DNA of 64,000 nucleotides from Hypanus sabinus. Taxonomy: Eukaryota. The translations under genes were made by a program, and so were the position numbers. Shown one piece after another: positions 28,208-53,302 of this stretch. The notes under the pieces were generated by a model. The model worked only from the letters and a program-made list of their open reading frames with translations. It ran no database searches and was not told where the DNA came from. How positions within the stretch are numbered: position 1 is the first letter of the stretch; each line of letters begins with the position of its first letter. The stretch covers positions 21,948,001 to 22,012,000 of the forward strand of contig NC_082717.1 in NCBI RefSeq assembly GCF_030144855.1, given 5' to 3'.

Positions 28208-28268
28208 CTGAAAAAGAAAAAGTAAGTTTACACTTAATTATTCCTAGAAGAAGAGAGATTCACATATA

Positions 28269-29644: not shown

Positions 29645-30401
29645 TGTTACAAGCCCACGGTCGTTTACTGAGACTGTTTCCTTAAGAGCGCCTGAGTGAG
29701 GCAGGACTATGACATCAGTCACAGGCTGACACTGCTAATTGTGGTCTTAATCACAGAGAAGGAGGGGAGGGAGGGAGAGGAAGAGAGGGAGAGACTGAGG
29801 AAGCCAGTAGCTTCAGCTTGTCGCAGCTGAGGTTTGGAACTCTCCTGTGCCCACAAGGGTGGGTTGACCATTGGCACGCAGAGCATTACAGAAAAGTGAC
29901 TGTCACTTCGTATAATCCATAGGAGTGGATTTTGGAATATCCTGTGGGACCACTTGTGTGTTAACCCTTGCCTGGGTATGTTGTGTGGTAACCACTCGAA
30001 GACAATATTCCTGTGACAATTCATATGTGGATTTGGAATGACACAACAGACTTGATCTACGGCGACTGTTATCCCATTTTACCAGCATGGAACCTGTGGA
30101 ATACTTCATACTTACTTTCTCTCTCCATTACAACGTGGATTACAAAGGCCTCTCTCCCATCATTTATTCCATGGCTGACTGAACTTTCCTACTTTACCAT
30201 CTCAAGACTCTAAGCCTCGTTCCCCCAAGCTCGATAATTTGGGAGCTGTAACTAACACACGTATATAACACTGTTAACTTCTATTTATCTTGGTTAAGTT
30301 ATTATATCATAAGTAGATACTAATAGTGATTTTAATATTAAAACAGGACCGTGTGAGATCTCTGCTGCTGATTTGTTTCTAAAATGTTATAGTTTGTAAC
30401 A
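29645..30401 (+). mobile_element. Probable solo LTR (family C, about 757 bp)
   Basis: Inverted termini TGTTACAA...TTGTAACA; imperfect flanks GAGG/GAGA; interrupts CR1-like sequence. Strand is tentative. Confidence 0.6.
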
Positions 30402-30405
30402 GAGA

Positions 30406-31600
30406 TTACAAGTAGAATAGATAAAGGAGTAGCAGTATATTTGGACTTTCAGAAGGCCTTTGACAAGGTGCCATACATGAGGCTGCTTATCAAGTTGACA
30501 GCCCGTGGTATCACAGTAAAGTTACTAACATGGTCAGAGCATTGGCTGATTGGTAGGAGGCAGCAGGTGGGAATAAAAGGATAAAAGGCTGCCAGTGAAT
30601 CATGGGATTCTGCAGGGGTCGGTGTTGGGAACATTTCTTTTTATGCTGTATATAAATGAATTATAATATGGAATAATTGGCTTTATTGCCAAGTTTGCAG
30701 ATGATACAAAGATTGGTGGAAGGGCAGGTAGTGTTGAGGAAACAGGTAGGATGCAGAAGGACTTAAATAGATTAGGAGAATGGACAAGAAAGTAGCAAAT
30801 GAAATACAATGTTGGAAAATGCATGGTCATACACTTTGGTAGTAGAAATAAATGTGCAGACTATTTTCTAAACAGGGAGAAAGTCCATGAGATGTAGAGG
30901 GACTTGGGAGTCCTTGTGCAGAATACCCTGAAGGTTAACTTGCAGGTTGAGTTGGTGGCGAGGAAAGCAAATGCCATGTTAGCATTAAGTTCAAGAGGTC
31001 TAGAATACAAGAGCAAGGATGTGATGCGGAGGCTTTAAAGGCACTGGTGAGGCCTCACCTTGAGTTTTGTGAGCAGTTTTGGGCCCCTCATCTTAGAAAA
31101 GATGTGCTGACTTTGGACAGGGTCCAGAGGAGGTTCACAAGGATGATTCCAGGAATGAAAGGGTTATCATACGAGGAACGTTTGATGGCTCTGGGTCTGT
31201 ACTCGCTGAATTCAGAAGAATGAGGGGGGTCTCATCGAAACCTTTCGAATGTTGAAAGGCCTAGACAGAGTAGATGTGGAAAGGATGTTTCCATGGTGGG
31301 AGAGTCTAGGACAAGAGGGCACAGCCTCAGGATAGAGGGGTGCTCTTTTGAAACAGAGATGCAGAGAAATTTCTTTAGTCAATGGGTTTTGAATTTGTGG
31401 TATTTGTTGCAACATGTAGCTGTAGAGGCCAGCTCATTGAGTGTATTTAAGCCAGAAATTGATAGTTCTTGATTAGACATGGCATCCAAGGTTACAGGGA
31501 GAAGGCCAGGAACTGGAGTTGATGAGGAGAAAAAAAAAGGATCAGCCATGATTGAATCAGCCAGAAGACCTAATTAGGCTCCTATCTCTGATGGTCTTAT
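30406..31600 (+). mobile_element. Degenerate CR1 LINE
   Basis: [19 protein letters not shown] and ALVRPHL in broken frames. Confidence 0.9.
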
Positions 31601-32039
31601 AATACATTACTGTGAGGCGGGTGCAATTATCTTCCTAAATCGACCTATTCATTAAAGGCATGAGATTCTACTATCTTGGTCGCTGATCTGATGATACTTA
31701 AATCAAGGAAAATACTATTGACAATACTGCTATGCATGAATGCACAAAACTGTTCTTAGTTAACAAAGCCCAGAAAAAAATTTACTCTGATGAGAACAAG
31801 AAGACAATTATAAAATATTAAGTCTTGTATGGAAGGTAGGCTGCACTGGATATACAAGTCACACTTTGCTGATTAATCCTATTGCTAAAAGAACAGCATA
31901 TACTGACTTAGCATTGCATTTGTTATGGTGATCTGCTGGTTTCTGTGTATGTTAAGTAGACCTAATGGAATGTGAAGTATACATACTGTACTAAAAGTCA
32001 GTACGCATTGAACTTCTTATCATTTTTCTGCTTGATAAG

Positions 32040-33600
32040 AACAACAAAGAGATAGATACAGGAGGCAGAGGGGCAGCTAGGGTTTTGCTTTGAGACAGAG
32101 GACTGAGCCTTCTCCAAAGACTCAGATCTGAATGAATTCACCATGGTTGTCACATTCTTTATAAAAAACAGTCGTAGACCAGTGTAGCCCCACAAAAATC
32201 ATTCAGTTTTCCCCAACCAGAAGCCCTGGATGAAACATGAGATCTGCAACCTGCTGAGGGTTAGATCAGTAGCATTCAGGTCTGGCGACCAAGAAAGATA
32301 CAAGAGGTCCAGGGACAATCACTAGAAAGCAATCTCACAGGCCAAGTGGAAATTCCAGACTAAACAAATCAGCTGAAGAATGCTTGACAGCTGTGGAAGA
32401 GCTTGAATGCTATTACCTCTTACAAGGTGAAACAAAGTGGCATAGATAACAACAAGACTTTGCTTCCAGATGAGCTCAATGCCTACTCTGTTCTCGCTTT
32501 GACAGACAAAACAAGGAGGAACTATCATGAACTGCCACAGCCCCCTATGACTGTGATTTTAGACTTTGAGGCCCTCGTGAGAGCATCCTTTAGGAAGGTG
32601 AACACCTGGAAGACATCTGGCCCGGATGCAGAACCTGTCAGAGTACCAAAGACCTGTGCTGATCAACTGGCTGGAGAGTTCACTGATATCCTTCATCCCT
32701 TACTCTGGCAGTCTGAGTACCCACAAGGTTCAAGTAGGTTTCAATTACACTGTTGCCTAGGAACAGTGTGGTAACCTGCCTCAATCACTATCACCCAATA
32801 GCACTGACATCTACTGTTATGAAATGTATTGAGAGGTTGGTGATAAAACATATCAACTTCTGCCTGAGAAGTGACTTGGATCCAACCTAATTTACCTACT
32901 GGCACAACAGGTCCACAGCAGATGCCATTTCATTCGCTCTTCATTCAACCTTGGAACACCTGGACAGCAAAGGTACATACATCAGGATGCTCTTTATCGA
33001 TTGCAGCTCAGCACTGAATACTATTATCCACTCAAAACTAATCAATAAGTTTCAAGACCTTGGCCTCAATACCTCCTTATGCAATTGGATCCTCAATTTC
33101 CTCACTTGCAGACCCCTGTCAGTTCAGATTGGCAACATTTCTTCCACAATCTCCGTCAGCACAGATGTAACACAAGCTATGTGCTTAGTCTCCTGCTCTT
33201 CTTACTTTATACTTATGACTAGGAGGCTAAACACAGCTTCAATGCCATATTTAAGTTTGCTGATGACACCGCTATTTTTGGCTGAATCAAAGGTTGTGAT
33301 GAATCAGTACAAGGAGGGAGAACGTCTGGCTGAACGGTGCCACAACAACAATCACTCATTCAACATCAGCAAGTTGTTGACTTTAGGAGAAGGAAACTGG
33401 AGGTCCACAAGCCAGTCCTCATTGGTTCTTCTGTATTTGCAGTTTGTTGTCTTTTGCACACTGGTCATTTGTCCACCCTGTTGGAAGTGGTCTTCTACTG
33501 TGTTTCTTGGATTTACTGAGAATACTGCAAGTAAACAATTCTCAGGGTTGTACATGGTGACATGTATGTATCTGATAATAAATTTATTTTAACTTTTTAA
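32040..33600 (+). mobile_element. Degenerate Rex1/Babar-like LINE
   Basis: KTCADQLAGEFTDI and YIRMLFIDCSSALNTI fragments; KFADDT at the nucleotide level. Confidence 0.8.
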
Positions 33601-35059
33601 ACTTGGATTTGATGATAGAGGTGGCTTCTTATTTAGAGCAAAAACTCAAAGTGTGTCACACTGAGCAATGTTTAACAACCTTCCAAGAGAGAATTTTTAA
33701 ACAAATCCTAGCATCCTTCAACTGAAAGAACTTCTCTGTATTTCAGTCCAAAATGGTCTACCGCTCATTTTGACTCGCCCCAATTCTAAGTTCTTCAACC
33801 AGGAGAAACACCTTCTCCACATCTACTCTGTTAAGCCCTTTAGGTATTTGTATTTTCAAAGAGGTAAATTCTTATTTTTCGAAAATCTGAAGATTTTACA
33901 AAATGTATTAGAAATCTATTCAACCGTGCACATGATACATTATCACGCCAAGAACCAGTCTGGTGAATTTGCACTGTTCACCCTCTTTATCTGGAGGGCC
34001 ACAGTAGTGTAACAGTTAACACAATGCTATGATATCTCAGGGCATCAGAGTGCAGAATTCAATTCCCGTGTCCTCTGTAAGGACTCTGTACATTCCAGGT
34101 GGAACGCATGTGCTAATTCTGGTTTCCTCCCACAATCCAAAGTAGGCTAATTGTCATTGTAAATTGTCCCATGATTAGGCTAGTGTTGAATCATGACTTA
34201 AAGGGCCAGAACAGCCTACTCTGCACTCTCTCTCTCTTAAATAAAAATAAATAAAATAAAGGAATTTAACAAAGACTAGAACTTATCATTGGCCAGTGCA
34301 GTGTGATTGACTTTTCCCCCCTTAATCGTTGTCACATACAAAAAGACTAAGTATTCAGGGATTGTATTTGACACATTTTACGCAGAAAGAAAAGAGAACA
34401 TGAAAGGAGAGCCGAGAGTTTAAATTAGATGATGGAAACTTAAATTCTGTGTGTTGTCTGAGAATGGGAGTTGGGCAATAGGAATGACTAGAACAAAAAG
34501 GGATCCTTCTAATCAATGATTTGTACACTATTGATGATATCTCATCTAAAATATCAAAATAGTCTTTCAGTATCACAAGATGTAAAGGTATCTGTCCTAG
34601 AGAAGACAACAAAATTATTCCAACCCAAACTATAAAGATCAGCTTAAATTTTCTAGAGATGCATAACCTTAAAAGAAGAACCTAAAAATCTAACTTTAAA
34701 ATTCTAACCTGCATCATTAAAGGCATCAGCAAGATAAGGGGATGAGGAATTTAAAGTTACTGTGAGATTGGATATGTTTCATTCAAGCTGATAACAAGGA
34801 AAAACACCTTGCTTTTCTGCAAACAGATATTAAGGATACTTCTGGAAAACTTTCAGCTCATCATAGAAAGTAATACAGGCAAGACTTTCATAGTACTATA
34901 TATATAGTGCTTATTATTTCTACATAGTACATAACATTTCTATACATGCTACAGGATTTTTTTTTATTTTCCTCCAGTCAGATGCAAAATCAAGGAATGA
35001 TTTTGAATACATAACATTAAATTTATGTAGTTTAAATCAACTGTTAATAAAAGACTCAC

Positions 35060-35168
35060 CTACACCCAACACTCCTCCATCTGAACAATTGGTCACTGTC
35101 TCTGCTGGAGGAGGTTTTGGAAAGAGACATCTATAGCAAGGTCCACCATTGTAATTATACACAGTGAG
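35060..35168 (-). CDS. MOCS3: MOCS3 exon 7 ([36 protein letters not shown])
   Basis: CYRC Zn motif and conserved TNCSDGG Cys; CAG acceptor and GTGAGT donor; 109 nt. Confidence 0.98.
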
Positions 35169-35719
35169 CTGAGAAGCAAACCAAAAATATAGTTTAAAAC
35201 ATCTTTGCAAAAGATAAAAAGAATTAGCATTTTTAATCCCACCATACCCACTACCAATTGAGGCCCCATGTGCCACCTAGGCACTAAGGGTTCAGACGAA
35301 GACGACGACACACAGCCAATAGACAGTATCGTCACTTTTCCCACACATTTCCTTCAAGGTGGTGTTCTGTATCAGTTTCCAAGATTGCTCTGCACCTCAC
35401 TTTCTGTTTTAACAGGTTCTTGGTTTCTCTCAGAAAGAACTGGAGACTGTCCAGTTGTTAACAAACATGTAACTCAATAATGGATCCTTGAGATTTGGCA
35501 CTACTGCAAAATCACTACTACAAAATTTTAACTGTTCTTCTTTAGTCAAATTACATGGAATTTTTTAAATGAATGTCCTATCTGCTCTGAAGGTCATGAA
35601 AGCCATATTTAAAAACAGAAAACAGAATCTCTCAGCCAGCCAAAGTTATCAAATGATTCCTCAGCAAAAAAAATCACTCTCTCATTTCTAATACTAAATG
35701 TCAACACAGTCAGTAGTGT

Positions 35720-36936
35720 CAATAGACAGTAGGTGCAGGAGTAGGCCATTCGGCCCTTCTAGCCAGCACCGCCATTCACTGTGATCATGGCTGAACATAC
35801 ACAATCAGTACCCCGTTCCAGCCCTCTCCCCATATCCCTTGACCCCGCGATCTATAAGAGCTCTATCTAACTCTCTCTTGAATGCATCCAGAGACTTGGC
35901 CTCCACTGCCTTCTGGGGCAGAGCATTCCACATATCCACCACTCTCTGGGTGAAAATGTTTTTCCACATCCCTGTTCTAAATGCCCTACCCCTTATTCTT
36001 AAACTGTGGCCTCTAGCTCTGGACTCACCCATCAGCGAGAACATGCTTCCTGCCTCCAGTGTGTCCAATCCCTTAATAATCTTATATGTTTCAATCAGAT
36101 CCCCTCTCATCCTTCTAAATTCCAGTGTATACAAGCCCAGTCGCTCCAATCTTTCAACATATGACAGTCCCGCCATTCCGGGAATTAACCTTGTGAACCT
36201 ACGCTGCACTCCCTCAATAGCAAGAATGTCCTTCCTCAAATTTGGAGACCAAAACTGCACACAATACTCCAGGTGGGGTCTCACCAGGGCCCTGTACAGC
36301 TGCAGAAGGACCTCTTTACTCCTATACTCAATTCCTCTTGTTATAAAGGCCAGCATGCCATTAGCTTTCTTCACTGCCTGCTGTACCTGCATGCTTGCTT
36401 ACATTGACTAATGTACAAGAACACCTAGATCTCGTTGCACTTCCCCTTTTCCTAACGACTTCATTTAGATAAATAATCTGCCTTCCTGTTCTTGCCACCA
36501 AAGTGGATAACCTCACATTTATCCACATTAAACTGCATCTGCCATACATTTGCCCTGTCCAAGTCACCCTGCATTCTCATAACATCCTCCTGACATTTCA
36601 CACTGCACCCAGCTTTGTGTCATCAGCAAATTTGCTAATGTTACTTTTAATCCCTTCATCTAAATCATTAATGTATATTGTAAACAGCTGCGGTCCCAGC
36701 ACCGAACCTTGCGGTACCCCACTGGTCACAGCCTGCCATTCGGAAAGGGACCCGTTAATCGCTACTCTTTGTTCCCTGTCAGCCAGCCAATTTTCAATCC
36801 ATGTCAGTATTCTGCCCCCAATACCATGTGCCCTAATTTTGCCCACTAATCTCCTATGTGGGATTTTATCAAAAGCTTTCTGGAAGTCCAGGTACACTAC
36901 ATCCACTGGCTCTCCCTTGTCCATTTTCATAGTTAC
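35720..36936 (-). mobile_element. Young 5'-truncated CR1 LINE
   Basis: [46 protein letters not shown]; few frameshifts; 3' UTR and tail. Confidence 0.95.
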
Positions 36937-37240
36937 CTACATCCACTGGCTCTCTCCTTAAGGGAAAAAAAAAACATGCACTTAAAATGACACTTATAAC
37001 ACTGTGATTAAATTCTATATTCCAGATCAGAATGATACAACAGAGAAAGGCCGCTTGCCTGCCACTTTGAAATATCCAATTGTTCACCCTCCTTTGCTTT
37101 TTCCATAACCTGGTAATAATTGTTTTCCTTTCAAATAGTTAACACATTTCCCAAATGATAGTTACAGTTTATCTGCTTCAGACAAAACATTTTATAAGAC
37201 TAAATATGTAAAAGGAAATTCCCTCATGTCACCATCAGTT

Positions 37241-37540
37241 GGTGCCACAGTGGCATAGCCGTTAGTATATGATGCTGTTACAGCGCAGGGGTTGGGGTTC
37301 AGAGTTAAATTCCAGCACCGTCCGTAAGGAGCTTATATGTTCTTGTGAACATGTGGGTTGCCTCCAGGTGAAACAGCTTCTTCCCACATCCAAAGATGTA
37401 CCAGTTAGTAGGTTAATTGCTCATTGTAAATTGTCCTGTGTTTAGGCCAGTGTTAAATAGATGGGTTGCTCGGCCGCATGGTTCATTGGACTGGAAGGGC
37501 CTGATCTGCACAGTATCTCTAAATAAAATAAATTAATTAA
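37241..37540 (+). mobile_element. tRNA-derived V-SINE (HE1-like); further copies at about 4728-4985(-), 14475-14702(+), 33995-34260(+), 47320-47570(+), 50262-50515(-), 50870-51050(+)
   Basis: tRNA-like head; V-domain-like core GGGTTTCCTCC...TTCCTCCCACA(G)TCCAAAG; CR1-like 3' tail with (TAAA)n. Confidence 0.75.
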
Positions 37541-37687
37541 ATTGCTCTTCTGCAATTAGATCAAATCTAACTCCACCTTTTATTGACCCTTCCAGCATTG
37601 GAAATGTCTCCCTTAACCCATTTAAAACTAATTAAGAAATGCTTACTCCCACAATAGTAGCATGAAGTTCTTTGTAATGACTCAAGA

Positions 37688-38125
37688 TCATATGAAGAAA
37701 GACTGGATCGACTAGGCTTATACTCACTGGAATTTAGAAGATTGAGGGGGGATCTTATTGAAACGTATAAAATTCTAAAGGGATTGGACAGGCTAGATGC
37801 AGGAAGATTGTTTCCGATGTTGGGGAAGTACAGAACGAGGGGTCACAGTTTAAGGATAATGGACCGAGATGCGGAAAAACTTCTTCACAAAGAGGGTGAA
37901 TCTGTGGAATTCTCTGCCACAGGAAACAGTTGAGGCCGGTTCATTGGCTATATTTAAGAGGAAGTTAGATATGGCCCTTGTGGCTAAAGGGATCGGGGGT
38001 ATGGAGAGAAAGCAGGCACAGGGTTCTGAGTTGGATGATCAGCCATGATCATACTGAATGGCGGTGCAGGCTTGAAGGGCCGAATGGCCTACTCCTGCAC
38101 CTATTTTCTATGTTTCTATGTTTCC
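37688..38125 (+). mobile_element. CR1 3' fragment
   Basis: RGDLIETYKILKGLDRLD; 3' UTR with (TTTCTATG)n tail. Confidence 0.9.
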
Positions 38126-39040
38126 ATCATCGGTAAACAGCATAGGCAGTGCAATTCTAAGGAAATACTTAGCAGTTTTATTGCATGTTAGTTGTAAACA
38201 TGCACTAAGAGAACAACAATAAAAATTAGGAATCCCTTTAAATTGATCTATTTCTTGATTTCTTTTTCAAATACAATGTGGAAGAGTGCCACTCTGCTTC
38301 TTTTGCAACTTACTAACTGACTCATACCACTGAGGAATGCACTACAGAATTTTTTTTATTTACCACTTTAACACAAGGAAAAATATAGTCATTTGCATAC
38401 AAAATAGACTAACATACAAAGGGTTAAGTCAGTTCAGTAAATGAAACAGATATTCCACAGTATAGTGCTTATCAATGCTGAATAGCTTAACCCATTTTCA
38501 GAGAACAAAATAGTTCAGAGGTATAAATTCTCAGAATCATTCAATGAATCTTGTTATGAGACATGAGTTTTAGCCTCTTGAACCTCTACCTTGCCTAATA
38601 TAGTTGGAGAATTGTGCCGAATATAAAATTGGTGCAGCAGCTTGTCCAGGCAGCTTTGCATCCAGATCAACACTAAGATCTCTCTCAGCTGGGAAAAACG
38701 CTCCAGATATTTTTTATTAGGCAGTTAGATTTCAAAGGTTTCGGAAGTACATTTAATGTCAGAGAAATGTATACAATATATATCCTGAAATGCTTCTTCT
38801 TCACAACCATCCACAAAAATAGAAGTGTCCCCAAAGAATGAATGATAGTTAAATGTTAGAACCCCAAAGCCCCCCCCCCCCAAGCTTCCTTCCCTCCCTC
38901 ACGTAAGCAGAGGCAAAGCAATAACCCCCCCAACCACCAGGTAAAAAACAGCACTCAACCGTGCGGTAAAGCAACAGCAAAGACAGAGACTTGCAGAACC
39001 CCAAAGACTACTCGTTCACCTGGTATTTGGCATACCACCT

Positions 39041-39044
<4 letters not shown>

Positions 39045-39074
<30 letters not shown>
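39045..39074 (+). repeat. (TC)15 microsatellite
   Basis: Direct reading. Confidence 0.9.
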
Positions 39075-39077
<3 letters not shown>

Positions 39078-39129
39078 CCCCCCCCCCAAATAAGGGAGAA
39101 AGAGGTGTCTCCATTTCACAAAGCCATTA

Positions 39130-40995
39130 TATCTTCCAAGTGATTAAGAAGGTAAAGATGGAATACGAAAGTAAGCTAGCCAATAATATTAAACAGGATT
39201 CCAAAAGTTTTTCAGATACATAAAGTGTAAAAGGGAGGCGAGAGTAGATAATCGGACCACTGGAAAATGCTGCTGGAGAGATAGTAATGGGGGACAATGA
39301 AATAGCAGATGAACTGAATCAGTATTTCGCATCCGTCTTCACTGGGGAAGACACTAGCAGTCTGGTGGACATTCCAGGTGTCGGGGGCATGAAGTGCGTA
39401 AAGTTACCATAACTACAGAGAAGGTTCTTGGGAAACTGAAATATCTAAAGGTAGATAAGTCACCTGGACCTGACGGTATACACCCCAGAGATCTGAATGA
39501 GGTGGCTGAAGGGATCGTGGAGCCTTTAGTAATGATCTTTCAAGAATCACTAGATTCTGCAATGGTTCCAGAACACTGGAAAAATGCAAATGTCACTTCA
39601 CTCTTTAAAGAGAGAGGCAATGGAAAGGAGGCTAAAGGCTGTTAATCTGACCTCAGTGGTTGGGAAGATGTTTTGTGAGGTATATTATTAAGGATGAGAT
39701 CTCAGAGTACTCAGAGGCACATGATAAAATAGCCGGTAATCAGCATAGTTTCCTCATGGCAAAATCTTGCCTGACAAATCTGTTGGAATTCTTTGAAGAA
39801 ATATCAGTCAGGATAGACAAAGGAAAATCATTTGATGTTGTGTACTTGGATTTTCAGAAGGCCTTTGACAAGGTGCCATGCATAAGGCTGGTTAACAACA
39901 CTCTAGCATGGATCAAGCAGTGGCTGATTGGCAGGAAGCAAAGGGTGGGTGGAAATAAAGGGAGCTTTTTCTGACAGGCTGTCAGTGACTAGTGATGTCC
40001 CACCGGGGTCTGTGTTCGGTCTTTTTAACGTTAAATGTCAATGATTTGATTGACGGAATTGATGGCTTTTTTGCAAATTTTACAGACGCTATGAAGATAG
40101 GAGGCAGGTAGTTTTGAGGAAATAGAGATGTTACAGGACTAGGACAGATTAGGAGAACTATGCAAAGAAATAGCAGGCGGAATAGTGTCAGGATGTGTAT
40201 GGTCATGCAATTTGGTAGAAGAAATGAAATAGTTGACTGTTTTCTAAATGGAGAGAAAATACAAAAAAAACTGAGGTGGAAGGGGACTTGGGAGTCCTTG
40301 TGAAGGATTCCCTAAAGGTTAATTTGCAGGTCGAATCTGGTGAGGAAGGCAAATACAGTGTTAGCATTCATTTCAAGAGGACTAGAATATAAAAGCAAGG
40401 ATGTAATGTTGAAACTTTATAACGCATTGGTGAGGCCTCACTTAGAGTGTTGTGAGCAAGTTTGGGACCCTTATCTTAGAAAGGATGTCTTGAAACTGGA
40501 AAGGGTTGAAAGGTCATTCACGAAAATTATTCCAGGATTGAATGGCTTGTCATATGAAGGCATCTGATTGCTCTGGGCCTGTATTCACTGGAATTCAGAA
40601 GATTAAGAGTTGATCTCATTGAAACCTATCAAATGGTGATGGGCTTTGATAGAGTGGATGTGGAGAGGATGTTTCCTATGGGTAGAGAGTCTAAGACCAG
40701 AGGACACAGCCTCAGAATGGAGGGGCGTCATCAAAGAAAGGAGATGAGAAGAAATTTCTTTAGCTGGAGAATGGCGAATCTGTGGAATTCTTTGCCGCAG
40801 GCAGCTGTGGAGGTCAAGTCTTTATGTATATTTAAGGCAGAGGCTGACCGATTCTTGATTGGTCAGGACATGAAGGTATACGGGGAGAAGGCAGGAGATT
40901 GGGGCTGGGAGGAAAATTGGATCAGCCATGTTGAAATGGTGGATCAGACTCGATGGGCCAAATGGCTTAATTCTGCTCCTACACGTTATGGTCTA
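39130..40995 (+). mobile_element. Degenerate CR1 LINE
   Basis: [35 protein letters not shown] and LVRPHLE fragments. Confidence 0.9.
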
Positions 40996-41608
40996 AGTAA
41001 AGAGAAAATGATAGAGTTTCACTCCAAATATGTAATTACATGGCTCTCTTAGCAACTGTTTCTGTAGGAATTCCAGGCAGCCATTAAATTCTGGACGACT
41101 TGCAATAGTAGTAAAGCTAAAGGGCCTGTATCTAGGCTGTATGACTTTATGACTCAAAGGTAGCGATTGCATACTGGAAGGGCTACCATAGGTCACGTCA
41201 ACCCTTGAAAAGGCAAACTGTGCAACTGATTTCATAGATTTTGTATTTTTTTCCTCTCACTGCTACATCAAGAAGGGATTATTTCCCAGATGACAAGCAC
41301 TTCTCATCTAACTACATCACTAATATCTGGTGTTCTCTAAATTGTCTGAATTTCAAGGCAATGACAGATGAACACAAAACACAATCTTCTAAACATCTCA
41401 AATACAACCTCATATTCAAAACAATTCTCTCTTACACTGAAGGTTAGTTTGCAGATACAACCTTACATAAAATGATTTGATTCCTCAATCAAAATCTCTT
41501 TTTATAATTTATCTCTGGTATTCACTGTCGAATTTGACTGAAGTGACTTGAGAACTTATACAGGTTTACAGTGGAGAAATTTATTGATGAGGTATCTCAA
41601 TATTTTAC

Positions 41609-41726
41609 CTGCCCCTCCATTCTGAGAGCACTGGCTGATACAAGTGGCTTCCCATTCAGAACACAGGCATCATTGACAAGATATCGCGTTGGAACATTGT
41701 CAGAACAATCTACTACAATATCATAC
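41609..41726 (-). CDS. MOCS3: MOCS3 exon 6 ([39 protein letters not shown])
   Basis: Highly conserved MOCS3 segment; CAG|GTAAAA donor; 118 nt; preceded by TTTTAT rather than AG. Confidence 0.95.
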
Positions 41727-41805
41727 ATAAAATTAGTTAAGAAAAATGTAGTTGATCAAAAGATAGTTCAACTGTTAGTCACTAAATAAAACACAAAAAG
41801 GATAT
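41727..41805 (-). other. MOCS3 intron 5: U12-type (minor) intron, 79 nt, AT-AT termini
   Basis: 5' ATATCCTTTT; branch TTTTTCTTAAC (41746-41736); 3' end TAATTTTAT|; joining restores R-Q-Y-D. Confidence 0.88.
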
Positions 41806-41880
41806 TGTCGAATTAGCTGACTTGCGTTCTTGAAATTCAACTGGAAGTGATACGGCAGACATTCAACATTTGAATTTAAC
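41806..41880 (-). CDS. MOCS3: MOCS3 exon 5 (LNSNVECLPYHFQLNFKNASQLIRQ)
   Basis: CTGCAG acceptor; ends at the U12 donor |ATATCCTTT; 75 nt. Confidence 0.93.
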
Positions 41881-41949
41881 CTGCAGACCAAGAAGAGTTT
41901 CAAGTTAAAACGTGTTGATTAAAAATAAAGTTATTGACCTGACATCTGT

Positions 41950-42880
41950 CAAAACTTGCTGGAGGAACTCACAAGACCAAGCAACATCTATGGAAAAGAG
42001 TAAACAGTCGACAGTTCAGGCCTGCATTGGGATTGGGAAAATGGATGAGAAGTCAGATGAAGAAGGTAGGGTAGGGAAGGAAGAAGTACAAGTTAGTAGT
42101 TGATAGGTTAAATCAGGAGAGGGGCAGGGGTGAAGTAAAGAGCTGGGAAGATGGTTGGTGAAAGAGATAAAAGGCTGGAGAAGAGGGAATCTCATTGGAG
42201 AGGGTAAAAGACCATGGAAGAAAGGGAAGGGGGCAGAGCACCAGGGAGAGGTGTTGGGCAGTAAAGGAGATAAGGCAAGAGAGGGAAACGGGAACTGTGA
42301 AGGAGAGGGATGGGGGCAATTACAAGAAGTTCAAGAAATCAATGTTTATGCCATCTGGTTGGAGGCTCCCCAGACGGAACACTAGTTGCTGCTCCTCCAA
42401 CCCGAGTGTCACCTCATCATAGCAGCAGAGGAAGCCAAAGACAGATGTGTCAGAATGGGAAGTAGAATTGAAATGGGTCGTCACTGGGAGATAGCTTTTT
42501 CTGGCAAGCGAGCCTAGGTGCTCGGCGAAGCAGTCTGTCAATCTATGTCGGGTCTCCCCAATATACAGGAGGCTGTACTGGGAACACCGGATAGACTAGA
42601 TGACCCGCAGCAGCCTCACTGATGAGGTGTTGACTCACCCGGAAGGACTGCCTGCAGCCCTGAAAGGTTGTGAAGGAGGAGGTTAGGGCCAGGTTTGACA
42701 TTTGTTCCGCTTGCAAAGACAAGTACCAGGAGAAAAATCAGTGGGGAGGGACAAATGGACAAGGGAGTCATGTAAGAAGTGATCCCTGCAGAAAGTGGAA
42801 AGTGTGGGGCAGAGAGAATGATGTGCTTGGTGGTGGGATCCCATTGGAGAGGGTGGAAATTACAGAGAATTATGGGCTCT
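41950..42880 (-). mobile_element. Penelope-like retroelement fragment (GIY-YIG endonuclease relic plus terminal repeat)
   Basis: FAEHL...VTTHFNSTSH...LEEQQLVFRLGSLQPDGINIDF; a YIGET-like segment upstream; shares the GCTGCC/CCTCCAGCA terminal sequence with other copies. Confidence 0.85.
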
Positions 42881-44204
42881 ACCATGATAAAAGGAGCACA
42901 TGAATCACAAATAATAAATTTTCAGTTAAATCAATCAAAATCCCTGGCCATAATATTATTTTACATGAGTAAAGAGTTGGGTGCTGAACACTTGATGTAA
43001 ATAAGAAAAAAATATATTTGTAATACTTGCAATTTTCAATTTCTTAGCATCAAAGGGGTTTGGAAGGATGTATACAAAATTGATACAAAGCATAGAATGA
43101 TGAATATGTGAAGTTAAGCAATGGGCCTTAAATAAGAAAATGTCTCAAATGGAATCTCACTTTCACAGGCAAATATTTGAAAAGCTGCAATTGAAAAGTC
43201 TTTATATTCTGTCAGATAAGCAGATAATCCAGTTTTTAAATTGGGAAACTGGATAATCTGGTCAGAGAATATTTGTCTCCTTAAGAGAAAAGTGAGAAGA
43301 TTCACCTCAGGACACATAAAGGAATACCATTGTTCATTAAACCAGGACAAGCATTTCCAAAAGCACACCTCAAGTAAGCATGATTAGTAGCCACAGAATT
43401 CTCAAACAGTAAGTCGTCAACACTAAATGAAAGAGGAGTCGGGGAAAACTGGCAAAGAAACAGGTGGAAGTCCCTCAAGTCAGGGGCTTGATTTTAAAGC
43501 AGATCCATTTAATATTTCAAAGTCCATAATTTTTATTACAATATATCTGAACATAGAGCAAGTTCTAAGTTAGAAATCAGTCTGATAAGATGGAACTAAA
43601 TTATCACATCCTGGACACCTGCTTTGGAAATCATGCACAAAAACTTTCCAGACTTGTCAGCATAAATATGTTTGGAAGAGATTATTTTTAAATACAATTT
43701 ATTCCATGTTAATTAATACCAAATCATTGCAAATTAAGGACTCACAATTTTAGTATTTTAAAGTTACATCTTTAATTAATTCACAAAATCAGTTTATCAT
43801 TACAGCAAAGTCAGTCATTCAGTTCATACCACTGTGTTATCTCTTTGAAAGGAATCCACAGACTATTTCCCTATTCTTTTCCCTTAGACTTGAATTTTTT
43901 TTTCATAATAAAATCCAGGTAATAACAGCAATTACTGCAGATCAATAGAAAGAACTCATGAAAAGCGATGTTGTTTTTGGCTATATTGGTGGACACACTT
44001 CAATTCTAAAGTTGCTCCACTGACGTCTGTTAAGATTGATAATCTAGACTGTATGCTCATTTAATTACTGACATGACTGACATGAGGAAACCACTACAAC
44101 ATAAATCCACTGAGACGTCTTAACGAGATTGTACTGCACTCAAGAAAAACCTCTTTCTTTGGTACTCTCAAAGAAAAACAACAAATTTAAAGAACTTCAC
44201 ATAC

Positions 44205-44325
44205 CGATTTATTGCAGTTGCCGCAGACAATGCTTTTGACATGCCCACCTTATCCTCGGCATGGAGAACCTGTCTCTGTAGGTTACTGAGCTCCACATCA
44301 TCATAATCAAGAAGTCCCAATCGAC
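44205..44325 (-). CDS. MOCS3: MOCS3 exon 4 ([41 protein letters not shown])
   Basis: ThiF/MoeB SNLxRQ motif; TTTAG acceptor and GTATGT donor; 121 nt. Confidence 0.97.
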
Positions 44326-44839
44326 CTAAATCGACATTCAAATATCACTAAACATTCCCACAGATCTTTAGATCTTGTCCCCTATAACACTGATTTATTA
44401 AAATATGCTGCTGAACAAGTTAGCTTTTTACAGAACCAATATTGGAAAGTAAGAGTCAGCCTATTATTGGTTTCCGTAGAACTTTACAAGGTCTTAGAGG
44501 TGCTGTTGCCACTGTTGAAATAAACTATTTACTACTTCGGAAAAACTACGAATACACAGATGTTTCTCTGTGAGACAGAATGTGAAATCCACTCTGAATT
44601 AACCCCACAGCACCAGAGTTTTGAGCATGTTATAAAACTGCTTGTTTTTGTTGCAGTCAGCAAAACAAAAGAGAATAATTTATTAAGAGACATTATGACA
44701 ACTCAGGTAATATACTCCTATTTATTAAAATAGTCTGCAATTCATAATTCAAATGGTCATCCTCCATGGAATGCAGACACAGGAGAAACTATTCAGCTAC
44801 TACAAGGGAAGCTACTCAAGTGCCAGTTGAAATAACTAA

Positions 44840-45289
44840 AGGCTGATTTATACTTGTGCGTATGGGCTACGCTGCTGCCCATGCCATAACCCTGGTTTTC
44901 ACTTCTGCGTTGGTCTGCGCCATAGCGAGCATGCATTGGTGTGTGCCAAAACGCTAGTTGACGGTAGGGTTTCTATGCCACTGTGTTAAGTTTCTTTGTG
45001 AGAGACATGGATAAGGAAATGCATTTCAAACATTTTCGCATGTTGGCAGGTAGATTTGACGATTTGGTTCATCTATTTTGCATCGGTGTACGCACAGCCT
45101 ACAGACATGGCGGAGAAGAAGCAAATCGAAATGCAATGCTACCAAGCGGACCAATTACAGTTGTGGTCTGCATCGCCACGATGCGGGAGTAACTTTTCTG
45201 GAGAGATGCATGTTACCCTACAGCATAGGGTACGGTGTAGGTACGCGTTACCTACGGCATTGATGCGTCACACAAGTATAAATTAGCCT
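44840..45289 (+). mobile_element. Non-autonomous PIF/Harbinger-like DNA transposon (MITE)
   Basis: TIRs AGGCTGATTTATACTTGTG / CACAAGTATAAATTAGCCT; TAA/TTA flanks; relic DKEMHFKHFRMLAGRFDDLV resembles the Harbinger transposase N-terminal FRM motif. Confidence 0.8.
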
Positions 45290-46395
45290 TTAGAGTATCA
45301 GAAGGCAATTAGTGGCAGAGTCAAGAGATAGAAATAGATGGTCTTATTGATGGCATTGAAAACTAGTCAGTAACTCAGCATTACACCAAAACATTTCAAC
45401 ATTCTGTCAATTTTAGAGAGTTACCAGCAGAAGAATGGAGTCAGTGCCTAGAAAATATAGACTGTGACACAGACTGAAGGTAAAGAGTTTTGAGTTGGAT
45501 AAATTTCTGCTCATCCAATAATGGATATCAGACAATTTACTGACAGCTGAGAGGACCGGAAAGGCAAGGGTGAGGTAAAGCTGGCTGTCATTGAGCATCA
45601 CATGGACTGTTATGTGGTTTCAGGTGACACTGTTGAAAGTACATTTATAGGTTTTAAAAAAACTCCGAGGAAGCCCTTGGGAAAGAGCATAATTAGTGAT
45701 GGAGAGCAGGAAGAAAAAAACATTGCCTGCAATTTTATGACAATAATTGGATTGACAAGAAATATACCAAGCAACATGTAAAGTGTTCTACTCATCATTG
45801 CTCCTATTTTTCCACCATTGATTGAACTTCTTAGTTCATCTATAACAGAATGAAATGTTCTTTCCCACAGGTAATTCGATACACCACAGTTTCGCTCTCA
45901 TTTAATCCATGTGGTTTCTTATCTTTCTTTCTCCACCCATACAATATACTATATCTTACAACTAAACTATTCATCCTGAACTTGTGCGTGCAACAACAAA
46001 TTATTAATATCACAATGCTGGAGGAACTATGGAGTACCTATGAAGGGCACCCTGGGTCTCACCTTGAAACACCAACTATTTATTCCTCTCCACAGATGCT
46101 GCCTGACCTGCTGAGTTCATTCAGCATTTTGTGTGTGCTGCTCTGCACTTCCAGCAGAATCTCATGTGTTTAAAATTATTAATAGGTGTGGTTAAAAAAA
46201 AACCTGAAACTCTAGTCTGGTCTCTGCAGAGCTTCACTTGCCTCAGCCAATTAGTCAGGAAATCAAGTATACATAAGCATTATTTATCCTGAGTACAAAA
46301 TAAAGGAAACCTGTGTCAATTTCCTTTAAGACATCTTCAGCAAAGTCTTTTGGAGAAAAAGGGGCCAAAGGAAACAAAATTGACAATGATCTTAC

Positions 46396-46488
46396 CAATG
46401 CCTGCAGCTGCCAGGTATTGCGCAGCGGGACAGCCCAGCCCTCCACATCCTACAATTAGAACAGCTTTCTTGGAGAGGTTGAGTTGAC
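46396..46488 (-). CDS. MOCS3: MOCS3 exon 3 ([31 protein letters not shown])
   Basis: GxGGLG loop; AG acceptor and GTAAG donor; 93 nt. Confidence 0.97.
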
Positions 46489-46971
46489 CTATTAACATTA
46501 AATTTTTAAACAAAGATTAATCTTAAGTAAAATTATACAGTGAAGAATATGGCATCAACAGATTTGTGCAAAGCAACTAACTTCTTTTCACACAGTATGT
46601 GTGAGTGAATAACACTGATAACTAGAAGAGACTGAAAATGTCATCAAATAGATGACAGAATAACAATAAACAAGGTTTGGTTACACCAAATTGCTTTGTT
46701 TTGTGTTCCAATTTATATATAATAAAATTTTGAAATTTTCTATTTGAAGAATTAGGCGTTTCATTGTGATTGTCATCTATAATGCTTGTGGTTTCCCTGA
46801 GGTGTAAAGCACATTATCACATGATATCTGAAAATCCTGTGATCATACAATTGTATGCTTTTCTCAACTTGCTTCAAGTGTAAATACAGAGATCGGCCAC
46901 ATGGTGGAACTGTTGAGAAAACTGAGCATAAGATTAGTACAGGTTATTTTTGTGTCGAGAAAATGGTACAT

Positions 46972-47187
46972 TGTAGCGGTGTGCTACACGCAGCGCTAAA
47001 ATTACGACACGGAGTCGGTAACTGCAGTCGAAGGAAAAAACTTTATTCGAAAACTTCAGCCTCACTTTTAAGCCTCCCTCAACCAGCACCCCCATGACGC
47101 AGAGGCTCCAAAGCTCTGTGCTCGCAAACCCCCGTAGGCTATCTAATTGTGAGTCGGTTCGGATGCGCCAGGAAATGGGTCGCCACA
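46972..47187 (-). mobile_element. Solo LTR (family B), CpG-rich and probably young, in MOCS3 intron 2
   Basis: Ends TGTAGCG/CGCCACA; perfect 4-bp TSD ACAT; AATAAA on the minus strand at 47047-47042. Confidence 0.85.
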
Positions 47188-49583
47188 ACATAAGCTTTAA
47201 AGCTGTCCTCTTTTGACATAGCCAAACAGATTATTTTTCTGCACCTCTAAGCAGATGGGCAAAATGCTTATGCAGACCCAAAACAAGATTGCATTTCAAA
47301 TATTAAATAAAGGAGGCTTGGTAGCATAGTGGTTAGCAGAATGCTTTACATTACTTGTGACCTTGGCGTCTCTAAGGAATTTGTATGTTCTCTTGGTGAC
47401 CGTGTGGGTTTCCTCCGAGTGCTCTGCTTTCCTCCCACAGTCCAAAAACATACCGAACACTAGGTTAATTAGTCAATTGTAAAGTGTCCCAGGATTAAAC
47501 TAGTTTTACAATCGGGAACAGCTCAAAGGTCTGAAAGAGCCTATTCCGCGTTGTATCTCAAATAATAAAACTAAAATAATATGCAAGTTAGTATATCACT
47601 ACCATATAACGGGGTTATTATTGTCACATGTATTAATATACAGTGAAAAAAAACTGATTTTGCATGACAGCCATACTGGTTATTCTAAAAGTATAAGGAG
47701 AATGAAAGGAATTTTGCCTTTGGTAAAAAATTTTAATTGTTTTCTCGTAGGATTAGGTATCATTCACTTGCTTTTGTTTTTCATTGCTTTTTGCCCCAAG
47801 TGGCTTGCTTGGCCACTTGAAATGCAGTTAAGAGTTGCATATAAAGAAACTAAATTCAGTCATCACATTTCCATACACAGAAGACACAAGCTAATCTCAT
47901 GGTTTCTACAAAATTTCAATACATTCATAATCATCCTAAATGATTTTTTTTCTAGATATTTTACTGAGATGTATTTAATTACTTGACTGCAAATTTGCCA
48001 AATGCCATAATGCCATTCAAACGTGTCAGAGTCACAGTTACGCAGCGCTGCAGCAGGGTCCTCATTCTACCATATCGATGATGACCCTCAAGTACGAACT
48101 CTACCACTCCCCCTTACTATCATGTGGCTTCTAACCTTCCATGCTGTGGTGGTTCAAGCATTCGTCCAGATATGATTTAAATTTTCTGAAAGCACCTCCA
48201 TCTCAAATAGTGCTTCTAAACTGCAAACACCCACTGACCGATAATTTTTTTCTTGTTATCCTTTCTAACTCCTCACATGAAACCTTTGATCTGTTTATAA
48301 GCCATCTCTGTTAAGGGGAGAAAAAAAATTCTTATTATCCACTATACCCTTGCAATCATAATTTTTCATACCACTATCAGATTCCCCCTCAGCTTCCTCA
48401 GTTCAAAGGGAAACGAACCCAGACTATATAGTTTCTCCTCATAACTGAGACACTTCATTGCAAGCAACAACCTGAAAAAATCTCATCTGTGCATGCACCA
48501 ATCACATCCTTCCTATAATGCTGCAAGCAGAATTATACATACTGCTCCTGCTGGGACTTCACCAAAATTCTGTAAGATTGTACCAGGAGCTCTTATACAC
48601 TTAAATTAGTCGAGCTGATGAAAATCAACATTCCGTAAGCCTCCTTCTCCACCTCATCTACTTGTGCTGTCACCTATATTCATCTTTGGACTTGTCTACC
48701 AAGGTCACTCGGGTCTTCAATCCAATTATGGTCCCTTCCCTTCACTGTGCATGTTCTCTCTCAATTGCCAGAGTACCAGTTCAAGACATGAGCTGTTGTG
48801 CTTAATATCACAGAATTTGATTAATCATTTGAACTCTGTAACAACAGAAATCGGGCTAAGCAATCAGTCCTGCAGAAGGATATTGGTCATGGCTTCATCA
48901 AAATCTGTAGTCCATCCTCTGTGGTAAAAAGCTTGGTATTTAGGTTTTGACAGAAAGTAAACAACAAATGAAAGCAGCAATACCAGATTTGTCTGTTTTT
49001 CCATTCAGCTAAATCCCTGGCTTGGGCATAAACAAGGAATCGAACCCCAATCAGAAATTCAAACACACTTTCTGAACAAACAAGTTACTTAAACATGCAT
49101 GAAAGCAGGCTAAAGAATTATAACCTGACAGATTTAATAGAATTCTGAGTTCATTAAGACTTGCTACTGTACTTTGCTGTACTATCCACTGTTGAAAATT
49201 AACTGAAACATAATTTCAGCAAGAGAGAAGTGAATTCTTACGACCCAGAGAACACAATTGTTCTAAATCGTAATGAAAAATTTGGCGTGGTTGATTTCAA
49301 TGAATTTAAGTAGTTAACAAATGACAGTAATTCATGAAAAAACAGCAACACACCGTTCCAGTTTCTAGAACAAGGTCACAAAAGCCTGCAGTACTGCCAA
49401 AATTGAACTCCAAATGTGCTGTACAGTCTTGTTTATCTGAACTTAATTTCACAACTCCCATTATGGGATATGAACTTCTGCTCTCTGTGTTTGGTGGCCC
49501 AATTCCATGACCACCACTCCAATGTAGTCTTTACATGTTAATTAAAATCATACAATTTGCATTCTACTTTTTTCTATCAATAC

Positions 49584-49719
49584 CTTTGACTCCAATTTCT
49601 GGAATGATAAGCTGTCTGCTGTACCTCATGATTTCTTCTTTAGAGAGTGATTTATCTTCCAGTGTAGGAATCTCTGTAACTTGTTGAACTAATGTGAACT
49701 TACTTCCAGAATGAGAATT
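49584..49719 (-). CDS. MOCS3: MOCS3 exon 2 (NSHSGSKF...LSKEEIMRYSRQLIIPEIGVK)
   Basis: TTTTTTCAG acceptor; RYSRQL motif; G|GTATTG donor; 136 nt. Confidence 0.95.
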
Positions 49720-51074
49720 CTGAAAAAAAAAGCATGATCAGGCTGAGAGAATGAATACAATCATCTTTAAAATTCCACAGAAATCCATAATACCCGTAAT
49801 AAAATGAGTGACTATACAAATTCTAAATCCACCTGACTCAATGTTTTTTTTGTCATGATAAAAACTGGACACACAAAATTAAAAATTTTCATGAGGCATT
49901 CCTTGGCAATATTTTGCCAAAAACCAAGAGCGAAGCAGAAGATTAAACCATAGAAACAAGAATTCAGAATTCCCAGCAAAATTTAATTATATAAGAACAG
50001 CAAGACCACTTGGGAAATGTTAGTCATGACTTTTATAATGGTGGGGAGAGGGGGGGGGGCAGTGGTGCCAGAAAGAGCTGGGTCACTTAAGATTTAAGGG
50101 CACAGAGTATCCTTACATTTGGGTCCAGCTTCATGGAAGACACAAAGAGACTCACAGATATATGATCAAAGTTCAAAAATCCAGAAGTAAATTAATTATG
50201 TCTAGAGTTGATGAAGCAAATGACAGAATTACACTCAGCAAAGTGTTTGTGCTGGAAAATTTTATTAATTTATTTATTGAGGTGCAGCATGGAATAGGCC
50301 CTCCTGACCCTTTGAACCTTGCAACCCAGCAATCCCACCAATCACAAGACAACTTACAATAACCAAGTGACCTACCAACTGGGACCTCTTTGGATTGTGG
50401 GAGGAAACAGAGGACCCTGAGGAAACCCACACGGTCTTGGATGTACAAATTGATTACAAGGAGCAGCAGGCCGCCTTTACTGTAAAGCATTGTGATAACC
50501 ACTACATTACCATTAACCATTTAAAAGATAATGAACTCCCAGTACCTGACAACCAAAAATTGTAAACAAAATGGCTGCTGGTAGAGTACATGCACATGTT
50601 GACAGCCTGAAAATTCAAATGAGGACAGAACATTTTCCACAGACTGGAAGTTAATACATGCAATCCCACTATGTACCAAAAGAGATAAAACAGGAAACTA
50701 TATAGACCAATCAGCCAGGCGTCAATTATAGAGTAAATACTGGAAATGAATTATCAAGTAATTTCAGTCTGCAGAGTGATCCTCAAATTCGGGTTGCCTG
50801 TACCTATGATTTTCTATACCATTTCCAATCTCAGCTGCATGTTATAAAGTTGAAGAACAACATCTGATGATGGCACAATGCAGGGTAGTGGTTAGCATGA
50901 CACTATTACAGCTTGGGGCCTTGGAGTTCAGAGTTCAATTCCAACGTCATCTGTAAGCAGTCTCCAAGTCCTCCCCGTGGATTGCGAGGGTTTTCTCCAA
51001 ATAGTCTGGTTTCCTCCAAAGGCATACCAATTGGTTGGTTAATTGGTATTTGTCTAAAACACAACAAATAAATA

Positions 51075-51245
51075 CAACACACACAAAATGCTGGAGGAAC
51101 TAAGCAGGCCAGGCAGCATCCACTGAAAAGAGCACAGCCCAAAAAGTCGACTGTACTCTTTTCCGTGGCTGCTACCTGAGCTTGCTGAGTTCCTCCAGCA
51201 TTTTCTGTGTGCTGCTTGGATCTCCAGCATCTGCAGATTTTCTCG
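51075..51245. repeat. Fold-back Penelope terminal-repeat element
   Basis: CACACAAAATGCTGGAGGAACT...AGTTCCTCCAGCATTTTCTGTG inverted arms; related copies at about 46010-46160, 54270-54425 and 17670-17790. Confidence 0.75.
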
Positions 51246-51773
51246 TTTGTCATTAAAATACATCTCTGGGGTCTATTCAAAAGCACTTTTTTAAAGATTT
51301 ACTTGGCCCTGACTGGCCAGTCAAGATTATTTAATATCATATCCAATACATAAGTGTAAAGGACAACGAAATAATTGTTACTCTGGATTTGATGCAGCAC
51401 AAAAAAGATAGAGAACAGGATAATAATAAAAACACACAATATAAATACATTAGATAGCTCATATACATATGTTGATTTAAGTCCATAAAGTGCCAGTAGA
51501 CACAGGAGTCTCATAAGGTGATCAACAGGAAATGATAAAGTAGTGGTGATTAGCGGCATGGCGGGCTGGGTTAGTGGGTGGAGTTGTTGATCAGCCTTAC
51601 TGATTGGAGAAAAGAAGCTCTTTCTGAGTCTGGTGGTCCTGGTATGGATGATGCGTAGCCTCCTCCCTGATATGAGTGGGATAAACAATCCAGGAGCCAG
51701 GGTGGGTGGGATCCTTCATGATATTACTGGCCCTTTTCCAGCATCTTTCTGTATATACGTCCTTGACGGCACT

Positions 51774-51980
51774 GACAGCCAAGTGCAACTCCTGGCCTTT
51801 TTGTGTGGCTGTTTCTACTGACCGGAGAAGGGGCAAAGGTGGGTCCTGGCACCTTAAAACCAGTGCTTCGGGTAGATGGAGTCGTCAGCCTGGGAAGGCA
51901 GTCCATCTAAGAGAGGGAAAACTCTGATTTCAAACCTCCGCTGCCTTGCGGCCAGACCCACTCATGGGAAAGGCTTAGAA
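51774..51980 (+). mobile_element. Probable 5' region of an RTE-type retroelement, abutting a minus-strand Rex-like fragment (51325-51770)
   Basis: GGCAG..CATCTAAGAGAGGGAAAACTCTGATTTCAAACC resembles RTE 5' UTR sequence; this is from recall, not from a search. Confidence 0.45.
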
Positions 51981-52432
51981 AGTAGAGGCATTGTTGAGCT
52001 TTCCTGATTGTGTTGGGTGTGTTCTGGGAACATGAGAGCTTGTGCAAGACGAGCACTTCCAGAAGATTGAAACTATTAGCAGTTTCCGCTGTTGTGCTGC
52101 CAATGTACAGGGGTGTAAGTTCTGAAGTTGATTACTATCTCCATACTCTTGCTAACATTGAGGAAGAGGTAATTTTTGTTTGCTACCTCTTCTCTGTAGG
52201 CCATCTCATTGTGACTGTGTCAGCCTGGAACAATCAATCCTACAAGAAAATACAGTGTGGATAGCTCCAGCACTCAGTTGGGGCTTTGCACGATGATCTG
52301 AAGCAAAAAGAGTTGGGCAAATGGAGAACAAAAACAAAACATTCATGTTAGATTCCAGAAGATGAAAAAAACAAACTACTGGACAAACTGAGAAGTATCT
52401 GTGAAGGCAGCTACATCAGGTGGAAGACCTGT

Positions 52433-52648
52433 TGTGGTGAACTACATATACCTGTCTGGACACGCCCCCCCTGCTGACTGCTCCAGTGGCTCCTCCCACG
52501 GACCCCGGTGTAAAGCTGATCAGGGCCTGAGCCCTGCCTCTCAGTCTCCAGGATGTGGCATGGTGGTCAATTACTGCTTGTTCTTTCTTCCAGTCAATAA
52601 AAGCCAATATCTCGTCTCACATCTCAGAGAGTTATTGATGGTGCATCA
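52433..52648 (+). mobile_element. Solo LTR (family A) in MOCS3 intron 1
   Basis: TGTGGTG...CATCA with perfect 5-bp TSD CCTGT (52428-52432 and 52649-52653); AATAAA inside. Confidence 0.9.
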
Positions 52649-53203
52649 CCTGTATCCACTACTTTTAGCCAGTATAAAGTGGTAACAGGTGCTAGAGGAT
52701 GGTAAGTGGAACCAGATGAGGATGATAACAGGCAAATTGCACCAGGTGATGGAGGGGAAGGAGTTGAGATGGGATCGAGGCAAATTAGAGATAGGTGGAA
52801 ACAAACTGAAGGAAACAAGGGGCAGCTGGAACGAGTGTTGGGGGGGGAGTGGGTGGCGTAGACATATGCTATAGGAGATAAATAAAGACACAAATGGCTG
52901 CAGATGCTGTTATCTGATAAGCAAGGGAGGTGATACTGAGATGAGGAGGGACAATAGGTAAATGGAGCAAGCCAGGACTAGATGGGGCCGCAATGATGCA
53001 GAACTCAATCACACTGCTCTCTGATACACCGAAATGAACACGAAAAGCTCAGGATTTCTCATCTGTGAAGAAAAGACTGTTGTTTACAGAGTAGGGCCTG
53101 TTATCCTCCTGCGAACAACAGAGCAAAGATGGAGTGAGTGTGGATTGGGGTGAACAGTGAATGAACGATGCAAAGGGAGAGTGGGGTCTGCTCCACTTGA
53201 TAC

Positions 53204-53302
53204 CTGATGCAGACATGCGATCGCTGCCCTCAGCCTCTCCACCTCCTGCTCTTTCTTGGCCAATTCATTCCTCAGCCTGGCCGCCTCCGCCTCCACCTCC
53301 AT
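53204..53302 (-). CDS. MOCS3: MOCS3 exon 1 (MEVEAEAARLRNELAKKEQEVERLRAAIACLHQ), coiled-coil-like N-terminus
   Basis: ATG next to the CpG-rich region; 99 nt; CAG|GTATCA donor; phase 0 matches exon 2. Confidence 0.85.

Follow-up and report, generated by a model that had tools for sequence, protein, structure and literature searches.

A probable minor-spliceosome AT-AT intron in the MOCS3 gene of Hypanus sabinus

AT-AT is an accepted subtype of U12 introns, and its ends are the second commonest of the non-canonical termini found among the minor introns of animals (PMC1557818; PMC10639083; PMC8280824). Six introns of this kind have been catalogued in human and six in mouse (Sheth et al. 2006, PMC1557818), and among conserved minor introns about 3.8% have non-canonical ends (Larue and Roy 2023, PMC10639083). 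AT-AT introns are grouped with AT-AC, AT-AA, and AT-AG introns as A-type, which are less efficiently spliced and dependent on CENATAC (de Wolf et al. 2021, PMC8280824), while GT-AT introns are classed as G-type (PMC8280824). U12 introns are defined by their 5′ splice site and branch site, which are recognized together by the U11/U12 di-snRNP; they have no polypyrimidine tract, and selection of their 3′ splice site depends largely on its closeness to the branch, with an optimum of 11-13 nt (PMC3584512). Those with non-canonical termini are spliced, often at lower efficiency (PMC3584512). The original prediction on this locus treated AT-AT as a rare tolerated variant.

We examined a stretch of 64,000 nt from H. 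sabinus (NC_082717.1, positions 21,948,001 to 22,012,000), referred to here as the window, in whose numbering all positions are given. The segment 41805-41727 on the minus strand is, with a probability of about 0.92, intron 5 of a 13-exon MOCS3 (UBA4) gene, a minor-spliceosome intron of the A-type (AT-AN) with AT-AT termini. The intron (41727..41805, minus strand) is 79 nt long and in phase 2. Its first bases are ATATCCTTTTTG and its last bases TTTTTCTTAACTAATTTTAT (...TTTTAT); exon 5 ends ...CAG CTA ATT CGA CA at 41806, and exon 6 begins G TAT GAT ATT GTA GTA GAT TGT from 41726. The original prediction had placed a 79-nt AT...AT intron at 41727-41805 between an exon 5 ending in CGA CA and an exon 6 beginning G TAT GAT ATT, and was exact to the base.

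This intron belongs to the class already catalogued and is not a new kind. It is like the human and mouse AT-AT introns (ERCC5, IK, Gpaa1, and Slc9a8) in having a ATATCCTT 5′ splice site, a TCCTTAAC-like branch site near the 3′ end, and a terminal T in place of C, one base away from AT-AC, and it differs from them in its host gene. Many of the catalogued AT-AT introns switch termini between human and mouse, whereas the 3′ AT of intron 5 is common to this one cartilaginous fish and teleosts. The conserved GT-AT U12 introns of SLC24A6/SLC8B1 and DEADC1 (PMC1557818) likewise keep the terminal T between species, but they are G-type and lie in other genes. No paper linking MOCS3 with U12 or minor introns was found in the literature searched. 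Mammalian MOCS3 is not known to contain introns, so that intron 5 would be missing from catalogues built on human and mouse, and the gene is absent as a host from both minor-intron catalogues. A mammal-like MOCS3 fragment from Logan (P0275) showed no interruption where introns 5 and 6 would lie (...LVRRYDVVADCSDN...FEGQITVYHY), which fits an intronless mammalian gene, though the source of this fragment could be RNA.

MOCS3 serves molybdenum-cofactor synthesis and tRNA thiolation, and its product is characterized by an N-terminal ThiF/MoeB adenylation domain and a C-terminal rhodanese domain. The gene was modeled by tblastn with fish homologues and by inspection of exon borders. The whole coding region (11949..53302, minus strand), with its ATG at 53302 and its stop at 11949, comprises 13 exons and 12 introns, with a CDS of 1,392 nt, and an intact open reading frame of 463 amino acids was obtained from the 13 exons only with the AT-AT junction. 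The deduced protein shared 65-66% identity along its full length with the MOCS3 proteins of Esox lucius, Labeo rohita, and Alosa sapidissima (titled "adenylyltransferase and sulfurtransferase MOCS3"), the genes of which have the same 12 intron positions; the alignment to the three teleost proteins was gap-free across the junction (teleost side ...ALQLIQQYDIVADCSDN). Exon 5 (41806..41880, minus strand, 75 nt), located by tblastn with E. lucius MOCS3, encodes LNSNVECLPYHFQLNFKNASQLIR and the first two bases of a Gln codon, and exon 6 (41609..41726, minus strand, 118 nt) supplies the G and 39 residues, with 0 mismatches to the RNA contig described below. When compared with the Pfam ThiF profile, exon 3 matched positions 15-44, exon 4 positions 47-83, exon 6 positions 111-149 (E 2.6e-13), and exon 7 positions 151-184; exons 3, 4, and 6 passed the Pfam cutoff and exon 7 fell just under it. 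Between exons 4 and 6 the profile leaves 27 positions free, against 25 residues in exon 5. The last exon had no match to Pfam when searched alone and aligned by tblastn to the rhodanese end of Esox MOCS3. The order of the profile matches, together with the identity to orthologues, indicates that the labels "exon 5" and "MOCS3" are both right.

The signals within the intron are those of the minor class. The 5′ splice site ATATCCTTT (41797..41805, minus strand) agrees at 9/9 positions with the A-type consensus (consensus per PMC3584512), with [A/G]TATCCTT present at +1 to +8. A TCCTTRAC-like branch-point sequence, TTCTTAAC (41736..41743, minus strand), lies near the 3′ splice site and matches TCCTTAAC at 7/8 positions. 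The region of U12 snRNA that pairs with the branch site is known, and on that basis the T-for-C change in the intron 5 branch site would still allow a G-U pair. From the presumed branch A at 41737 to the last intron base the distance is 10 nt, at the low margin of the optimum of 11-13 nt (PMC3584512). Exon 6 follows the branch site after only 9 nt (TAATTTTAT), in which neither AG nor AC occurs, as had been anticipated in the claim that no AC was available at the 3′ end; the intron closes with the non-canonical dinucleotide AT (41727..41728, minus strand), in which the teleost orthologues end too. The specificity of these signals was examined within the window: RTATCCTT alone was not rare (11 matches versus 5.3 expected), while ATATCCTT with TYCTTRAC 35-65 nt downstream of it was found once in the window and in 0/100 shuffles, and this sole match falls exactly on the borders of exons 5 and 6.

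By analogy with known U12 introns, the U11/U12 di-snRNP would recognize the 5′ site ATATCCTTT jointly with the branch site TTCTTAAC, and the 3′ cut would be set mainly by distance, about 10 nt past the branch A, and not by an AG or AC, so that a terminal T would be tolerated. Excision joins CA to G and so completes the codon for the Gln in ...LIRQ, a part of the ThiF adenylation domain. The motifs and the orthology described below thus point to the minor spliceosome as the machinery used. Removal by the major (U2-dependent) spliceosome through non-canonical ends could be proposed, since U2-type introns with AT-AC-like ends exist (PMC1557818) and the last 25 nt of intron 5 are T-rich; however, the perfect agreement of the 5′ site with the U12 A-type consensus, the branch site 10 nt from the intron end, which leaves no room for a separate polypyrimidine tract and AG, and the presence of GTATCC and TCCTTGAC in the orthologues make this very improbable.

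The orthologous intron was next compared in other animals, a check put forward with the original prediction. In E. lucius (L005), L. rohita (L009), and A. sapidissima (L010), it was found to be U12-type, ending in AT but starting with GT, in the form GTATCC...(C)CTTGAC...CAT followed by G TAT GAC. The CCTTGAC element was positioned 13-15 nt before the intron end in these three teleosts and in four fish contigs, all of them GTATCC...AT; contigs L001-L004, the DNA for two of the ORF fragments, read CA, then GTATCCTG...CCTTGAC...CAT, then G or A and TAT GAC. The teleost introns are like that of the window in position and phase (after the CA of the Gln codon before YDIV), in their U12 5′ and branch sites, in their AT end, and in being short (about 100-600 nt). 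They differ in their first base, G (G-type) as opposed to A (A-type) in the window, and in that their cut position is ambiguous by up to 4 nt, owing to a repeated GTAT, whereas the window junction is unambiguous. Many of the best exon 6 matches in the representative library were short ORFs called on genomic contigs, and in 27/27 of the closest ORF fragments that read from the 3′ end of the intron into exon 6, the codon before Tyr was Met or Ile (ATN), which indicates that the last two intron bases are AT. More distant contigs presented other ends at the orthologous position: (i) TTTCCTTAAC...AC in L006 and TTCCTGAAC...AC in L007, both contigs too short to include the 5′ end; and (ii) GTATCCTTA...TTCTTAAC...CAG in L008, a GT-AG orthologue with a branch site identical to that of the window. 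Non-teleost MOCS3 was absent among the best 120 matches to a salmonid query, cartilaginous-fish-like matches were absent among 19 fragments retrieved with a 52-aa ORF spanning the intron end and exon 6, and no deuterostome outgroup was present among ten distant full-length homologues (cluster names nematode, insect, and fungal).

These comparisons bear on whether the terminal T is real. A true AT-AC genome, with the T introduced by assembly or sequencing error, could be argued for in that AT-AC is far commoner than AT-AT and one base apart from it, that no same-species genomic run was present among the sequencing runs searched (best word share 44%), and that spliced RNA is blind to T versus C at the last intron base. 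Against this stand, first, the AT end in the three named teleosts, in the four further fish contigs, and in the 27/27 ORF fragments with an ATN codon and, second, the unspliced genomic contigs from three related species (X15, X16, and X18), which cover 41300-42003 and are about 3% divergent from the window. Inside intron 5 these contigs had differences listed at 41762 and 41774 only, and none was listed at 41727/41728 or 41804/41805; this comparison shows differences only, and 2-13 per contig are not displayed, which are probably in the repeat that begins at 41942 (41942-42003). Since no change was listed at the intron ends in any of the three relatives, an assembly error is unlikely, and we would give it only a few chances in a hundred. 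Within the cartilaginous fishes, AT-AT is thus seen in the window and in the contigs of three close relatives, and we retain AT-AT as the true termini of the H. sabinus intron.

Splicing at 41806/41726 was examined in RNA. Four runs were aligned to 41300-44500, among which X21 (organism A) was the sole RNA run; it consists of assembled contigs and not raw reads, carries the record label "DNA?", and is taken as RNA from its exon-only cover and its depth. In contig record 25 of this run (1,119 nt, depth 23), 41806 was joined directly to 41726 at record positions 665 and 666. Record positions 469-592, 593-665, and 666-783 correspond to 44203-44326, 41806-41878, and 41609-41726, that is, to exons 4, 5, and 6, and the match to these exons was 315/315 identical with 0 mismatches. 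The exon 4/5 joint had a 2-nt GT ambiguity and fits a canonical GT-AG intron at 44204-41881 (44205 joined to 41880). The exon 5/6 joint was unambiguous: the base after exon 5 is A and the first base of exon 6 is G, while the last intron base is T and the last base of exon 5 is A. Because the flanking bases differ at both ends, the segment skipped is 41727-41805 and nothing else. Excision at exactly 41805-41727 is therefore demonstrated by this contig, which uses the predicted junction. X21 had zero depth across intron 5 and across the unique sequence of intron 4, and no contig retaining intron 5 was seen in this one run, in which contigs drop rare forms. A depth of 23, confined to exons, in a run that totals only 185 million letters indicates that X21 behaves as RNA and not as single-copy DNA. 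The share of sampled words did not exceed 44% in any sequencing run, and values of 0.31-0.44 are those expected for a spliced transcript of this stretch. An origin of the joined contig in an intronless, processed retrocopy at another genomic site might be suggested by the "DNA?" label and by the apparently intronless state of mammalian MOCS3, from which it follows that retrocopies of the gene can become fixed, but the full identity over 315 exon bases, the depth of the contig in a run with none over unique intron sequence, which fits mRNA, and the similar exon-sized word share (0.31-0.34) of seven small organism A runs (X1-X4 and X22-X24) make this very improbable. Beyond exon 6, record 25 contains 336 further bases, equal to exons 7, 8, and 9 (109 + 63 + 164); by length arithmetic the contig may end at the exon 9/intron 9 border with intron 8 removed.

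When exon 5 and exon 6 are joined at 41806/41726, CA and G form the Gln codon and a 12-residue stretch is restored. The prediction of a U12-type AT-AT intron in MOCS3, the removal of which restores a conserved stretch, thereby agrees with the RNA contig, the 463-aa open reading frame, the gap-free alignment to orthologues, and the U12-type introns of teleosts. If intron 5 is retained, an in-frame TAA is met at 41775..41777 (minus strand), ten codons past the last full exon 5 codon and as forecast at about ten codons in. Since this TAA is far upstream of the last exon junction, an intron-5-retaining transcript would, as predicted from the sequence, be a formal target of nonsense-mediated decay; the original prediction had suggested that removal of the intron may be a rate-limiting or NMD-coupled step. 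GT-AG alternatives at the exon 5/6 border were also considered. Those that were stop-free and in frame would delete 10-11 conserved residues or insert foreign ones; the donor at 41821 with acceptors at 41713 or 41710 loses 10-11 conserved residues, close to the loss of about 10 that had been estimated for the nearest alternative, and was unused by the X21 contig. The locus thus provides a clean, RNA-supported AT-AT minor intron whose cut site cannot shift.

The comparative data suggest how the ends of this intron have changed. The 3′ T is common to this cartilaginous fish and to bony fishes, and is probably an old, stably inherited end, given that the teleost orthologues end in AT as well. As the nearest comparators are GT-AT, the difference between the lineages lies in the first base, A here and G in teleosts. 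The original prediction had derived the intron from AT-AC by one substitution; a 3′ AC in two distant contigs leaves room for such a step, reasonable as deep history, but with the nearest comparators in the GT-AT state the T is probably old. Intron 5 is an old U12 intron that has had several different terminal dinucleotides over its history. An ancestral AT is most parsimonious and, if AT was ancestral, the C-to-T change would have preceded the split of the two fish lineages and would not be a recent quirk. The more specific proposal, that the 3′ T is older than the divergence of cartilaginous from bony fishes and that the first base has changed between A (H. sabinus) and G (teleosts), is offered tentatively, at slightly less than an even chance. 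If true, minor introns would have, in N-AT ends, a stable and lasting way of switching between A-type and G-type. The intron spans both types, A-type here and G-type in teleosts, which in human cells differ in their dependence on CENATAC. The persistence of the 3′ T across this switch and the presence of three conserved U12-type introns in one gene, described below, add a modest extra interest.

The exon 5/6 junction of MOCS3 was found to be a frequent point of error for gene-prediction pipelines. The orthologous GT-AT intron was misread in 22/119 of the teleost MOCS3 database proteins examined, or about one fifth (P0033, P0151-P0164, P0194, P0213, P0235, and P0242-P0267). Most of the misread entries were automatic UniRef models, and three had NCBI records. 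Two of these three read the whole intron as coding (LIQQYP...LDFTDLIYDIV), while the other misread entries rely on forced alternative sites, with conserved residues lost or replaced. In the UniRef misreadings exon 5 was trimmed or skipped and exon 6 was extended upstream (...LLDIIHLMYDIV). Most NCBI teleost models were correct (LIQQYDIV). The expectation that pipelines would mis-annotate the intron is thus borne out for the teleost orthologue only, and there in the minority of proteins given above.

Two further introns of the gene have U12-like signals. Intron 8 (25308-28144, minus strand, phase 1) has a GTATCTTTT 5′ end and TCCTTAAT 14 nt before its CAG 3′ end; its orthologues in Esox and Labeo have GTATCC with TTCCTTGAC or CTCCTTAAC and AG, and that of Alosa has GTATCCTTC and a weaker branch site. 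Intron 11 (17033-23685, minus strand, phase 1) has a perfect GTATCCTTC 5′ site and TTTCTTATCC about 12 nt before its CAG 3′ end, and its orthologues in Esox, Labeo, and Alosa begin with GTATCCTT or GTATCCTC, with TTTCCTTAT or TTTTCTTAC close to an AG. On these signals, introns 5, 8, and 11 would make up a set of three U12-type introns conserved from the window gene to teleosts, which is unusual for one gene, and we tentatively propose that the output of fish MOCS3 would as a result depend on three minor-spliceosome steps.

Repeated sequences are also present in and around the gene. Inside intron 4, the element at 41942-42950 is repeated to a very high degree, with a summed contig depth of up to 10^4-10^5 in genomic runs and in the thousands in the RNA run, and shows numerous internal joints and loose ends; it is presumably an interspersed repeat of the SINE or LINE type. 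ORFs with reverse-transcriptase-like motifs (FADDTK...) were detected on both strands, in and around the gene, at 35805-36930, 39394-40567, and 55930-57190, and look like LINE fragments in MOCS3 introns and upstream of the gene.
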